A DNA stretch of 64,000 nucleotides from Tubulanus polymorphus (Eukaryota > Animalia > Nemertea). The notes beneath the pieces were generated by a model, which searched no databases, was not told the origin of the DNA, and was given only the letters and a program-made list of their open reading frames with translations. Of this stretch, positions 17,901-26,900 are shown in pieces. The DNA is taken from NCBI RefSeq assembly GCF_964204645.1, contig NC_134033.1, positions 14,392,655 to 14,456,654 of the forward strand, given 5' to 3'. Every line of letters starts with the position of its first letter. Positions within the stretch are counted from its first letter, which is position 1. The translations under genes were made by a program, and so were the position numbers.

Positions 17901-20900
17901 CAGATATTTACACTGGCCCTGGTAGTCGAGTTTCAACGAATCGTATGTCTCGTAGTGAGGGTCATCCGCGATTTCACATTTACAGACTTTTGAGAAGAAG
18001 CATCGAAAAATTCTCGATCAAATTGTAGTGTTAGGTTTAAAAATTCAAGATACCTTCATTATTTATTTACTTTCATCTTTGATAACAAGGATATTAATTT
18101 GATTGTTCATTTGCCAAATGTTCCAGCTTAGTTCGCACTCCAGAAAATACTGGACCCATGGGTTAGGATTTGACTAGGGGCTAACTCATAGAAAATTGAG
18201 TAGAATAGTAACTGAGAATGAAATTAAACTCAGAATCGTGGAACTGGATCTATTTTTACCTAACATGATGGATAGACCTATGTATTCTCAACGTAAAAGA
18301 AAATAAACGATCCCACATTATTCATGAACCTACCTGCTTTGAGATCAACCTCAAACTCATCCTCAAAGAAACAGAAATTATTGTTTCCCAGATGATGAGA
18401 TTAAGATTGAGATATCATAAATTGTGGAATCGCGTGTTGTTTGTATTCTACTGCTGTTATACGTAGGTCTTGTAGCTTAGAATCGCGTTTTTAAGATGAA
18501 CAATTCGATGCCTACCTTTAGTGACGGGTGTCTCTTTCGGGAACACCGGTTTCGGATTGGTAATTTCAGGCGAAACATCTAAAAGAAAACAATTAGAAAT
18601 TAATTTATTATTAGAAGAATCACTGACCATCTTATCCAGTATTGGTTCGATCTAATGAATTGAGTTGGTCTGGGAAAGTCGGTCTGCCTAACTAGGTCAG
18701 CTAAAAGAAGGCTACTCTTTGAACATTGTTATTATTGACGAATAAATTCAATTACCTTCTGGTACTTCACCTTTCTGAGCACTTGTGCCTAGAATAAGAA
18801 ATTATTTAATCATTACTTTTAAAAACATTCAACGTCAAAGCAGTAATTTATTAGTATTAGTGATGTTGCCATTCATTATGTTCTATTGGGTGCTGGTTAT
18901 CATGCATTAGCGTTGATACCTGGTTTCACTGCTGATGGTTTTTCTGATGACCCTTCTGGCGTTTCTTGTTTCTGGGCACTTGTGCCTGAAACATAAACAA
19001 GAAAACTTACTTTCAAAAACGTTGAATAATAAATCTATCGCTGAAAGGAATCAACTTTTCGAACATTATCTTCCGTAATATCGGTGTGGGATTTTCTATA
19101 TATCGTTACAACACTGAAGAGTTTTCACCATGGAATTGTAATAGACTTATAACAGACTTAAAAAGCGTATATATGTAGGTCTTGATACCTGGCTTTACTG
19201 CGGACGGTTTCCCAGGTTTTGTTGTTGTCCCCTTGGGCGTCGGTTTCGTCGTCGGTTTCGTCGTCGGTTTCGTCGTCGGTTTCGGGGTAGTTGTTTCCGG
19301 AGCCTTGCACCCGGTTTCCGCATCAACGAATTTCTCCGGTGGCACGCACCGATCTATTCATGGAAATATAATCATCTAATGAAACAAATGCATTGAATCA
19401 CTGATTTCATTCATCGTGTTCTAGCGGTCAGAAACGTTTGAAATTTTTAATCCAACGAATAATTACATAATTCATCTTTATATATAGCGCTATTTGCTGA
19501 AACACAAAGACTCGCTGTTGTTGACAAGGTAGAAAAATTAATTACGAAGAACTACTGATTTAAAACTACTTTGACTGGTGTAAGTATTCTGCTGGTTTTA
19601 GTTTTCGGTTTACGTAGTTTTGATCTTGGTCGGTAGTGTTGCCCGCACACTGTAACTAGCCTGCAGGACTCTAACCCGCTTAACACTCAGCACAAGCATC
19701 ACGCCTTATCTCACTGAGATACTTTGAAAATATCAAAGTCAAGAAAAAAAATGCCCTCGGTCTTTATGTCATAGGAATACAAATAGACAATCTTTATTTT
19801 TGTTCAAAATTTATGTTTAAAGAGCTGATTTAAAATGGTTAGAATTTTCAATATTTCAATAATAGTAATTACACGCATTTTCAAATATCCTCACAAAAAC
19901 CCTATATTTACCTTTGCATTCCCCATCCTTCCAAACCTCTCCTGTCGAGCCATCGCATACACCTAGTAGTGATAAACAAGATTATTATGTTTCATAATTC
20001 ATCATTTGTGTACACGTCAACGTCATGTTGTCTACCAGGATAACTTACTGACGCATCCATCTTTTTCATCAAATTTTAAGCCCTCCGATTTTTTGCACAT
20101 TGCTGCAAAAACAGATAATAGTATAGTTATTATATCACCATTCTTCCAATTTCTCGCTGTCCACGCTTTACCCTGTGGTCAGGGTATTATTCTCTATTTG
20201 CGACATTTGGAAAAATAAACTTCAAAAACTAGACATTTTATCAGCACACTTTATATGATCGCCATTACGTAACGTGAGACATTTAGAAAACATTTTTATT
20301 CAAAGATTTTCATAATTTGTCCTAGTTTTAAAAATCAATTTACATATATCGTTAAGAGTTTTGAGAGTGTTTTAATGTAAATCGCTTTCAAATAATCGAT
20401 TATCATCATTATCATTAAATTGAAAATGAATTTACAGAACTAACAAAGGCGCGAGACTTTCAAGCGTTTAAAAAGTGCTCGCCGTGAGTTTATCTAGGCC
20501 CGAGACATTAAACACCCAAAAGTTAATCATCAGATCTTAGTCAGCGGTTCAAAGATTGCAATTGAAATACAGTGTATACTTTACTTACGTCCACATTTTT
20601 TCAGTTTCTCGTCAAACTTCTCGTTTTTCTGCTTGTTGCACAAAGCTATTGAACACAAATATATCATATATATTGTTACATTAACTGTAGAATTCATTTC
20701 TTCCTGATTTGGTTTGACGTTTTTGAAATATAAATTAACTGTGAAAACCTGTTCGGGTTTATTTTTAGTGTTTGTACTACACGGTACTCACGATCACAAC
20801 CGGTTTTCTTCGCGTTCAGTTTCTTTCCCTCTTTCGCGACGCAAAAATCTGATATACAAAAATAAACGATTTGGTAAAAATGTTTTTTTTTACCCCATTA

Positions 20901-23900: not shown

Positions 23901-26900
23901 GAGTTTGTTTACATATTGCTATCCTCTAATTTCAAAACTGACAACACTTACGTTCACATTTCTCCTTTAACTTCGGGTTGAACCTTTCGCCCTCGGTCTT
24001 GTCACAGATGTCTGAAAATAGATTTTATTACTACGTATTTTTTGCTGTCAAAATCAGCAAATAATCAATACAGTTAGCGTTGTATCTCCTTTCAACGAAC
24101 CTTTGCAAATTTTGTTTTTGTAATCGTACATTTTCCCTTGATTTGAGTCGCATTTATCTGAAGGAGGAAAATGATAGGTGAATATTTGTTTGTTTGCGAT
24201 CAAATTCAAAATTGTGGGGTTCACTTACCAACGCATTTGCGGCCTTGCGGTTTTTGCGACTCACTACAATCAGGAGGAGCTGAATAAACCAGAACAAAAA
24301 GGAATTGTTGGCAATTTAGGCTTTTTGTACTCGACAGTTTAATATATAATCTGTAAGGCCTTTTTAATAGCTTGGTTTACGGGGCAGACCTATCCAAATA
24401 TCATCTCGGAGGATGACATAGAAATTTTTTTTAAATCCCTTAGTGAAATAAAATAATTTTTTTGAAGGTAATTAATATACATATGTCAAAACAAATGATT
24501 CTTGGAAAGTTCGAATTCTGCACACTGTGACGAAAAAAACCTTGCATTTTTCATCATTCAAGCCAGGATTCTAATTCGGCGGAGGTGAAAAAAATATCTT
24601 GCTCATTTTTTCACTGAATTTGTTCCACAGACCGGAATAAAAAAAAAGATTTTATTTCTATTTGACTTTTCTCTAAATTTCGGGAGGCGGTTCCCATAAA
24701 CCAAGCTTTTAAAAAAGGTATTATCAATGATTTACTTACGGCAGTCTTTTGGCAAGTAACAATTCGGCGACTTTTCACCTTTCAGCGTATGTTTCAGATA
24801 ACCCTTGTCGCATCTACAACCTTCGACCTTCGTACTTTTTTCCTCTGCCGTGCAGGTCTTCATTTCTGGGTCGTCGCAAGACGGCGCGCAATCGATCCCA
24901 TCGGGGTAGTATTTCGAATGACTACTGTCGCAGTTCGCGGCTACAATAACATTTTTTAAGCCGTCAGTAAAATATTATTCATTTAGGAAACTTTCCAAAG
25001 GTATCTGTATTGCCAACGATACACACATATATAAAAAAAAACGATTTAAAAAACAAACATTTTGAACTATCAGCGTTTGGTCATTTCAACGACTGTAAGA
25101 CAGTTCTGAAGCATGGGATTGTTCAATAAGAGCAGCCACCTTCGACTAGTTCGCCATCTAGCGGAAAATAAGGTTAGTAGGACAACCATTCGCTAGGTGA
25201 CCACGCCCGTATTTCAAGGTTTTTCATCGTCACTCCTCACGTGACATCGCCATGGAGTGGGTTTCTAATCATTGCCCAAATACTTACGACAGAATTCGGT
25301 TGTGCGATAGTTTTTCACCGGTTTTTTATCTTCAATGCACGCACGGTACGTTGATTCCATCTTGTCGCATAGTGACGTCTTGATTTTATCAAATGGTTCT
25401 TTCTTCTTCTCCATGATACACAGATCTTCTATGCACGCTTCGTACTCTCTTTCAACTTTCGTGTTCTTGTTTTTGGCGTCACTGCGCACAACAGGCAAAT
25501 AATTGAATTAGTAGAACAATAGGATGGGGTACCCGCAGTGCTACTGTGGCAATCGAGGATTCCACTTATGGCAGGCGAGGATCCGCTAAGTTTGCTAGTG
25601 GTTACACAGCTTCTTCAGCTTCATTTCAATTAAATTCGAATCTACTTTTCTCATTAGTAAATCAATTTTCAGTAAAACTATACCACGCACTCGTTGGGCA
25701 CGTCGAGACTTGTTTGACAATGTTTCCGTTTTAGAGCCTTAAAGTCCAGTTTTAACTAATTCTCACTACGTATAACTGAGTAAATCATTACGCCATCTGG
25801 TGCGGTATTCATTATAAATGCCGCAAGGAAAAAAGATTCCATTGCGTACTCGGGAGATTTTCTAAAAACTTCGTTCGATTCAGCTGGGTACACGGCCTGA
25901 CATACATATTAGTTTTAATCGGCCATTTGTAATTTTCCCAGGTAGGAGAGAGGCAATGAAACCGTGAGAACTTACCCACAAGCTGCTTGGAATTTGATAA
26001 GTATGAGTCGACAGAACGAATACCCGGCGAACATGGATCGTACTCGTTCGCTGCTGCAAGGACTGGGTTCTGGAACGGGTAGCTCCTTACAACTATACGA
26101 AATGATTAAAAAAAAACTCCACAGTTACAACTGGTTAACAACGTTACGCAATTCGATCAAAATGAACTGACAACTCGCAACAGTGTGGAACTGGGTCCTG
26201 CGACGTATCATGGTTTTTCAAACAACCAATCACATCCATAGGACTCTTAATTGTATCGCGATCATAAAATGTTCTTACTTTTTCGTAGGAGCATCCGAAT
26301 CATCTGGTACTTCAAAAGACAGTCCCATTACATTTTGGTTATCGGGAGTATCGACCAATGTAGCACCTGCACTCGTCGTTACGTCATTTTCTGCCTTACC
26401 GTCGCAATTTCCACAAAGACCAATCATCTTATCTAAATTATGTATTCAGCTGGATTATTTGCGAATAGCTCTGATATATTGTTATTTTCACGAGCGTCCC
26501 CAGACGGGGTTTGGAGGCGAGGACGAATCACCATTTCAAATCGAAGTTTCGCATTTTTTCAAGCTCCAAAATTTGTATTTCTTTTTTGTACATTTCAGAA
26601 ATTCCTTTAAAAACTTCCAGAAAACGCCTCTGTCAAGCTACGAATTTCGAGAAAATTCAAGGAATTTCAAGAATTCAGAAATGTTCATTTGCCTTCGGCG
26701 CTTGGCGAATGCGGCGCCAAGTATTGGCATATGTGCTTGTTGCATTAATTCTGATCCAAATTTAAAAAATTCTAGTGACGCCCGTGTTTTTCCTCGTGAA
26801 TACTGCGCGAATGATTGACTTAGCTGTCATTCGATTCGTAAATGGGTCTAGTACGAAATGAAACTTACTTTTATATTTGTCGGGTGCTTCGAATATGAAC

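Follow-up and report, generated by a model that had tools for sequence, protein, structure and literature searches.

A micro-exon array of two-cysteine modules in a VWD-C8-TIL gene of the ribbon worm Tubulanus polymorphus

The micro-exon array and its host gene

This study concerns a stretch of 64,000 nucleotides from the genome of Tubulanus polymorphus, a palaeonemertean ribbon worm (assembly GCF_964204645.1, contig NC_134033.1, positions 14,392,655 to 14,456,654 of the forward strand), which was analysed over its full length and is called the window here. A gene on its minus strand encodes, in this order, a signal peptide, a VWD-C8-TIL unit, 18 small modules with two cysteines each, a Pro/Thr/Lys-rich linker and a second VWD-C8-TIL unit, and the array of modules between the two units is our main subject. 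The array runs from position 24279 down to 19189 and consists of 17 exons of 45-60 nt followed by a 165-nt exon (19353-19189), each encoding one module; in the last of them the module takes up the first 17 codons. An AG acceptor behind a pyrimidine-rich tract precedes all 18 exons, with YAG at 17 of them, and a GT donor follows all 18, in the form GTRAGT at 12. All 18 exon lengths are divisible by 3, the exons are open only in phase 1-1, and the introns within the array measure 71-634 nt. Every module contains exactly two cysteines, which lie 10-15 residues apart, the gap from the last cysteine of one module to the first cysteine of the next is always 3 residues, and the codon split at the module junctions is mostly one for Asp, Pro or Ser. 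An aromatic residue (W, Y or F) is found in 16 of the 18 modules, and a Gly stands three residues ahead of the aromatic position in 10 of the 18. The array is rich in charged residues of both signs (19.7% Lys, 19.1% Glu plus Asp), so that its net charge is near zero.

Such a concentration of modules is not what the composition of the region would produce. In a strict scan, the minus strand gives 17 matches within the 5.1 kb of 19189-24279 and 5 along its remaining 59 kb, and the whole plus strand gives 5, while 200 shuffles of the array region give a mean of 0.33 matches and a maximum of 3; chance is therefore excluded as the source of the array. A profile built from the modules scores 6.6-26 bits at these 18 places and matches nowhere else in the window. 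We consider it very probable that the 18 units are genuine coding exons, because sister genes, described below, keep the same modules in the same order.

The individual modules, all on the minus strand, differ in how closely they follow the common pattern. Module 1 (24229-24279, 51 nt) is atypical in having Pro-Pro ahead of its first cysteine and no aromatic residue, and the sister arrays open with a module of the same type. It is followed by module 2 (24101-24157, 57 nt, 22.3 bits), whose best match is module 2 of the sister gene at C9:15.40 Mb, and by modules 3 (23952-24011, 60 nt, 22.3 bits), 4 (23459-23515, 57 nt, 19.5 bits) and 5 (23234-23293, 60 nt, 17.7 bits). Module 6 (22795-22854, 60 nt, 16.9 bits) most resembles module 5 at the C9:16.33 Mb locus, another sister gene. 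Then come modules 7 (22490-22540, 51 nt, 17.5 bits), 8 (22354-22413, 60 nt, 23.5 bits) and 9 (22159-22215, 57 nt, 17.9 bits), the short module 10 (21480-21524, 45 nt, 8.4 bits), and module 11 (21299-21355, 57 nt), which is the best match to the profile at 26.1 bits. Module 12 (21128-21175, 48 nt, 11.9 bits) has an AAG acceptor, and module 14 (20792-20848, 57 nt, 19.8 bits) has Leu in place of the aromatic residue. The others are modules 13 (20987-21043, 57 nt, 20.1 bits), 15 (20589-20645, 57 nt, 16.8 bits), 16 (20049-20102, 54 nt, 17.3 bits) and 17 (19912-19962, 51 nt, 17.0 bits). The module of the last exon (19189-19353, 10.7 bits) leads directly into the Pro/Thr/Lys-rich, mucin-like linker, and this exon is likewise of phase 1-1. 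Modules 1, 10 and 18 are the weak members of the array.

The array and both flanking units read as one intact gene. Exon 1 (27812-27878, read from the sequence) supplies the ATG and a signal peptide, which is hydrophobic, before a GTAAGC donor in phase 1, and the exon that follows it opens directly with a VWD motif. Behind this signal peptide Pfam finds VWD, C8 and TIL in that order, twice, as in the D assemblies of VWF. The first unit is made up of the N-terminal VWD exon at 27354-27601 (E=1.3e-08, on the open reading frame, or ORF, 27165-27662), a C8 piece at 25268-25507 (E=4.3e-06) and a TIL piece at 24740-24974, detected upstream of the array on ORF 24974-24735 with a score under Pfam's cutoff (E=0.0024). 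At 24740 the TIL exon closes in phase 1, as module 1 requires, and beyond the array a further linker exon of ~66 nt (~18985-18920, counted by hand) is again of phase 1-1, so the frame is continuous through the array; the end of this linker exon resembles the end of exon 18. The second unit contains an N-terminal VWD piece at 17736-18017 (E=1.5e-07), a C-terminal VWD piece at 16690-17091 (E=1.8e-05, profile positions 130-155), C8 at 15768-15992 (E=2e-08) and TIL at 15345-15605 (E=4.9e-09), where the ORF stops, possibly at the C-terminus of the protein. Of the roughly 1100 codons of the coding region, the micro-exons contribute about one third, and the remainder consists of ordinary domain exons. 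Scans of the gene for tRNAs and Rfam families were blank. Its intron 2 carries a long microsatellite at 27165-27350, whose trinucleotide units would be translated as poly-Ile, poly-Leu or poly-Tyr. Thus, the anatomy given in a preliminary description of this DNA is borne out: it had placed 18 two-cysteine modules, one for each phase 1-1 micro-exon and all at the positions given above, in a Lys/Glu-rich array between two VWD-C8-TIL units, and the Pfam domains, the signal-peptide exon, the composition and the Pro/Thr-rich linker after the array all agree with it.

Sister genes and growth of the array

By searches of the same genome we have identified no fewer than three sister genes that share this layout, in which modules follow the first TIL domain. 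The locus at C9:16.33 Mb was found by the module profile, and those at C9:15.40 Mb and C2:25.21 Mb by a survey downstream of the closest VWD relatives. At C9:16.325-16.327 Mb there are six module exons, or seven with the atypical first one, of 54-60 nt and all in phase 1-1, which follow a VWD-C8-TIL unit. The gene at C9:15.40 Mb has 11 module exons after its first TIL (an array of ~12 modules), and the gene at C2:25.21 Mb has about five. All of these arrays resemble that of the window in position, in the coding of one two-cysteine module per phase 1-1 micro-exon, in the atypical first module and in the colinear identities of the modules, but they are smaller than the window array with its 18 modules. 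The gene at C9:16.33 Mb further differs from the window gene in having two kringles after the array, and the sisters share with the window gene only ~50% identity in the flanking domains and can hardly be aligned with it in TIL. Searching the genome at the DNA level with the whole array returned only the array itself and two interspersed repeats in its introns, with no DNA-level copy of the array, and a genome-wide IUPAC pattern for module exons gave 145 matches against 220 in a reversed control, which makes it useless for counting arrays. The two intronic repeats (22969-23066 and 19635-19723) each occur in dozens of copies genome-wide at 75-84% identity, and ARAGORN detects no tRNA in them.

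Comparison with the gene at C9:15.40 Mb reveals how much of the array is old. Each of window modules 1-11 has its partner at the same place in the series 1-11 of this sister gene, with a colinearity chain score of 285 against 192.5 +/- 19.9 for shuffled module orders, none of 2000 shuffles reaching 285. The paired modules share 44% of their amino acids, and their synonymous difference (pS) is saturated at 0.84 with a nonsynonymous difference (pN) of 0.35; for the modules at C9:16.33 Mb, pS is about 1 and pN 0.32, and no introns can be aligned. Although the pairs were picked as best matches, which biases the ratio, saturated pS together with lower pN is the pattern of an old coding sequence under constraint. 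Modules 12-17 of the window, in contrast, are without counterpart in the gene at C9:15.40 Mb, and their best matches are other modules of the window. In addition, a stretch of ~117 nt that covers the end of the module 17 exon and adjoining intron (19806-19922) is 97-100% identical to a stretch 2.9 kb away at the end of the module 6 exon and its intron (22687-22805), and this near-identity reflects recent and ongoing exchange inside the array. Because modules 12-17 match their own array and the 117-nt copies are nearly identical, we regard the array as an old colinear core with younger additions and exchanges, an outcome that is expected of unequal crossing-over among symmetric exons. Most likely, an ancestral set of ~11-12 modules, still common to the sisters, was enlarged as phase 1-1 exons were duplicated in tandem. 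The array clearly illustrates how a protein can lengthen by such duplication, recent additions having joined an ancestral colinear core.

One sister gene is covered by public annotation. The partial NCBI model LOC141910631 (P0142) represents the gene at C9:16.33 Mb, is 100% identical to the C9 translation, begins at an internal Met within the C8 domain, and runs through TIL and the array, here the atypical first module with five more, to a Pro/Thr linker and the kringles. Its six spliced modules are joined exactly at the boundaries predicted in our analysis. However, the model joins module 2 straight to module 4 and leaves out an intact module exon, G000:C9:16326864-16326920 (minus strand), which has a good acceptor, a good donor and a profile score of 22 bits, so that the omission is due either to exon skipping or to incomplete public annotation.

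This omission is the only hint we have of regulated skipping, by which the array would serve as a set of cassettes giving isoforms of different length and valency according to tissue or state, in the manner of the schistosome micro-exon genes or of tropoelastin. The preliminary description had pointed out that any subset of the exons can be skipped in frame, and this part stands, since it follows from phase 1-1. But phase 1-1 is also the usual state of shuffled extracellular modules and is normal where such modules have been duplicated, with no need of a role in splicing; the order and identity of 11 modules are kept between sisters, which argues that most of them are used; and the exon missing from P0142 may have escaped annotation in what is a partial model. 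Splice tuning of the array is therefore a tentative suggestion, although one that would be compatible with the structural role favoured below.

Two other VWD genes of this genome (C9:11795800-11805799 and C9:11751100-11761099, both minus strand) contain different two-cysteine micro-exons, of 42-54 nt, in phase 1-1 and with a Cys-Pro-x-Gly start. The coding of one hairpin per exon is therefore a wider habit of the VWD gene family.

Predicted fold and relationships of the module

The fold of the module was modelled on the sister array P0142, not on the window array. A single-sequence AlphaFold2 model of TIL plus array was discarded at a predicted local distance difference test score (pLDDT) of 50. 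With a 31-row module alignment, in which 30 module sequences were aligned with the array, AlphaFold2 gave the P0142 array a mean pLDDT of 75.9 and a predicted template-modelling score (pTM) of 0.39, with the qualification that the alignment directly informs only one module position of the model. In this prediction all five of the five modules form two strands of 3-4 residues, that is, one beta-hairpin each, in which a short turn after the first cysteine leads to a strand bearing the aromatic residue and, after a turn of four residues, to another strand with the second cysteine. The low pTM would fit flexible joints between the modules. The two cysteines of a module probably pair with each other, because such pairing would leave no free ends and because it matches the closed hairpin between the fourth and fifth cysteines (C4-C5) of CBM14 domains. 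Foldseek comparison with PDB and an Atlas shape search, both made with the better model, returned nothing at E below 0.07 or with a template-modelling score (TM) above 0.47. The nearest shapes, all of them weak, are the cysteine-rich rods found in the receptors for insulin and TNF, EGF arrays, the EGF/DPY arrays of Dumpy and CBM14/DUF5874 arrays. A feature search of the protein atlas gave a best score of 0.81, which serves as a lead only.

Sequence searches assign the module to no named family. In Pfam, a family match was found neither for the single-module ORFs nor for the spliced sister array (P0142:122-236), where CBM_14, Dumpy_DPY (PF21164) and DUF5874 were all missing at E up to 10. The best Pfam result for the sister array is a sub-threshold TIL (14.6 bits, E=0.037, where the cutoff is 24.5). 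A TIL identity of the module (PF01826, ~55 residues and ten cysteines) was rejected at this score, and the window's own TIL hairpins score <6 bits with the module profile. Likeness to the Dumpy DPY module, itself a small two-cysteine unit, is confined to shape, at a TM of 0.44. A word search with the spliced sister array returned only itself among proteins of 219-696 residues, and the module profile run against PDB sequences matched only F-box/WD40 blades, a chance match of the motif. When the profile was run against 1.84 billion representative proteins, five matches were obtained, one from a beetle and four from metagenomes, in a search that also missed P0142, a known positive with five good modules, so that a blank there does not mean absence of the module elsewhere. 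The best of the five is a ladybird beetle protein with 16 CBM14 domains, and the spaced hairpins of the four metagenome proteins (P0002-P0005) match only positions 33-48 of the CBM14 profile. These four proteins, of 241-374 residues, carry three to five copies of a 16-residue two-cysteine hairpin with Ala/Arg-rich linkers between them; one is encoded on a 192-kb contig, and they possibly come from a giant virus or an alga.

These matches bring up the possibility, raised in part by the preliminary description, that the module is related to chitin-binding type-2 (CBM14) domains and that the array is a multivalent sugar binder, in which minimal CBM14-type hairpins with one aromatic residue each would bind chitin or other GlcNAc-rich glycans by avidity. 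The modules of the window do map to the last hairpin of CBM14 (profile positions 33-50, and 35-50 for the modules scored one by one), hhalign aligns the same columns, the aromatic residue is kept in 16 of the 18 modules, and clusters containing CBM14 are among the nearest shapes. The shared motif consists of Cys, 2-5 residues, Gly, two residues, an aromatic residue, Asp/Asn/Ser, ~5 residues and Cys. However, the scores are low, at 0-11 bits per module, a probability of 41% in hhalign and a TM below 0.5, and even a permissive Pfam search found no CBM14 in the spliced sister array. Furthermore, a CBM_14 domain (PF01607) has ~50-55 residues and six cysteines, whereas the module has 15-20 residues and two cysteines, so that four of the six cysteines and the entire N-terminal half are missing, and a motif that also matches WD40 blades by chance may be a generic hairpin pattern. 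The likeness to CBM14 thus holds as a motif, the C-x-G-x-x-[FYW]...C end of the domain, and at that level only; as homology it is unproven. We consider a sugar-binding array a serious alternative, though a rather unlikely one.

Possible function and comparison with known systems

The reading that we favour, and consider somewhat better than even, is that the array consists of real coding micro-exons of one secreted, disulfide-polymerising glycoprotein and serves as a hairpin-rod spacer in a mucus, tube or adhesive. The product of each exon would be a small beta-hairpin whose own two cysteines most likely close it and whose first strand carries the Gly and the aromatic residue. Strung together like beads, the hairpins would most likely form a long, semi-rigid rod or spacer rich in positive and negative charges, which would keep the N-terminal cross-linking unit at a distance from the second one and from the glycosylated linker, or serve as an interaction rod. 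Such a protein would probably be part of mucus, a tube or an adhesive. It has been reported that flatworm glue proteins and the sea-star protein Sfp1 combine VWD, C8 and TIL with long repeats and a high content of Cys and Lys (PMC6410801), and that VWF- and mucin-like genes are up-regulated in the ribbon-worm proboscis (PMC9132205).

Several points weigh against this reading. The three sequencing runs that hold this stretch come from one 2024 study, none of them is recorded as RNA, and their contigs are colinear with the genome, with no splice joints. The hairpin model is that of the sister gene's array, so the pairing in the window array is something we infer, as we infer both the spacer role and the material. 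There is also no obvious C-terminal cystine-knot domain and no Cys-rich ORF downstream of the second TIL, as judged by eye, and the host gene is therefore probably not a classical gel-forming mucin; mucins of the MUC2/MUC5 type have C-terminal VWC and cystine-knot dimerisation domains and a long Pro/Thr/Ser domain, and the Pro/Thr-rich linker exons here are only short.

Among known systems, the flatworm proteins Mlig-ap1/ap2 and sea-star Sfp1 are, like the window protein, large and secreted, with VWD, C8, TIL and long repeats (PMC6410801), and the protein class of polymerising domains plus a charged repeat rod is that of the glues and mucus of other marine worms. However, the repeats of Mlig-ap1/ap2 and Sfp1 are Lys/Arg-rich stretches, units of 221-255 residues or EGF modules (PMC6410801), not 18-residue hairpins, and no homology to the array was seen, none having been tested for. 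The micro-exon genes (MEGs) of schistosomes, to which the preliminary description had likened the gene, also encode secreted products by runs of short symmetric exons, of 3-81 bp there and 45-60 nt here (bioRxiv 10.1101/2023.06.21.545858). The analogy is valid for gene structure only. MEGs are small genes made up almost wholly of symmetric micro-exons, with long introns, and encode small secreted proteins, whereas the micro-exons of the window gene, with short introns between them, make up only one part of a large domain protein, and the two show no sequence relation; we do not count the window gene as a MEG. The EGF/DPY arrays of Drosophila Dumpy and the rods of insulin/EGF and TNF receptors are likewise strings of tiny disulfide-stapled beta modules that form extended extracellular rods, although the likeness is weak in shape (TM <=0.44, Foldseek E >=0.07) and absent at the level of Pfam, and these rods alternate module types where the window array repeats one. 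In the genes for tropoelastin, fibrillar collagen and the PEVK region of titin, one short repeat is encoded per small exon, all in one phase. They share with the window array the exon-per-module layout, the uniform phase, tandem exon duplication and cassette-like exons, and differ from it in their documented alternative splicing and in their unrelated chemistry, which is without cysteine hairpins. The module is unnamed in public libraries, but growth by one exon per repeat and phase 1-1 modules are already textbook knowledge, and no new principle is involved.

Two further explanations of the array are very improbable. It might be a polyprotein precursor that is cut into free, disulfide-closed hairpin peptides acting as toxins or antimicrobials, given that each module is a cationic hairpin of 15-20 residues with one disulfide and that ribbon-worm mucus is rich in peptide toxins (PMC9132205), but the joints are only three residues long with no regular dibasic or other processing sites, and the array has a net charge near zero and sits between polymerising domains. 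Equally remote is the explanation that the units are chance open frames or decayed pseudo-exons outside any mRNA, as the colinear genomic contigs and the blank for a product of the window gene among the 1.84 billion representatives might suggest, since there are 17 matches against about 0.3 expected, the frame runs on into the flanking domain exons, module order is shared with sister genes alongside saturated synonymous sites, a public sister-gene model splices modules of this kind, and the blank carries little weight when the same search missed P0142.

With 18 modules, the array is larger than any other yet met in this small, lineage-restricted family, which counts four or more VWD-C8-TIL genes of the ribbon worm and is only partly covered by public annotation. 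If RNA and protein work confirm the structural role, the gene would be a useful subject for work on nemertean mucus, tube or adhesive material and on minimal disulfide-stapled scaffolds. We may also speculate, as a bold and improbable extension, that an unnamed, self-contained two-cysteine module, possibly the smallest carbohydrate-binding unit, has been multiplied exon by exon in palaeonemerteans, and that regulated skipping would set the length and valency of the polymer, which would make the array a splice-programmable molecular ruler.

Neighbouring features of the window

The remainder of the window contains other genes. Tandem intronless ORFs of ~360-430 residues, in two related groups, lie at 40878-57032 and 9421-10563 on the plus strand and at 12372-13457 and 14089-14316 on the minus strand; they have the look of seven-transmembrane receptors, and the set includes a truncated copy adjoining the 3' end of the VWD gene. 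Long TA-type microsatellite runs are located at 15020-15230 and 29960-30190. To judge by their motifs, the ORFs at 1024-1872 (minus strand) may encode a carbohydrate sulfotransferase, and those at 60000-62900 (minus strand) may be exons of a carboxylesterase-type gene. An intronless gene at 36224-37729 on the plus strand encodes a CYP2-type cytochrome P450 of 501 amino acids, whose best named relatives, in Tubulanus polymorphus and Lineus longissimus, are 41-47% identical to it.

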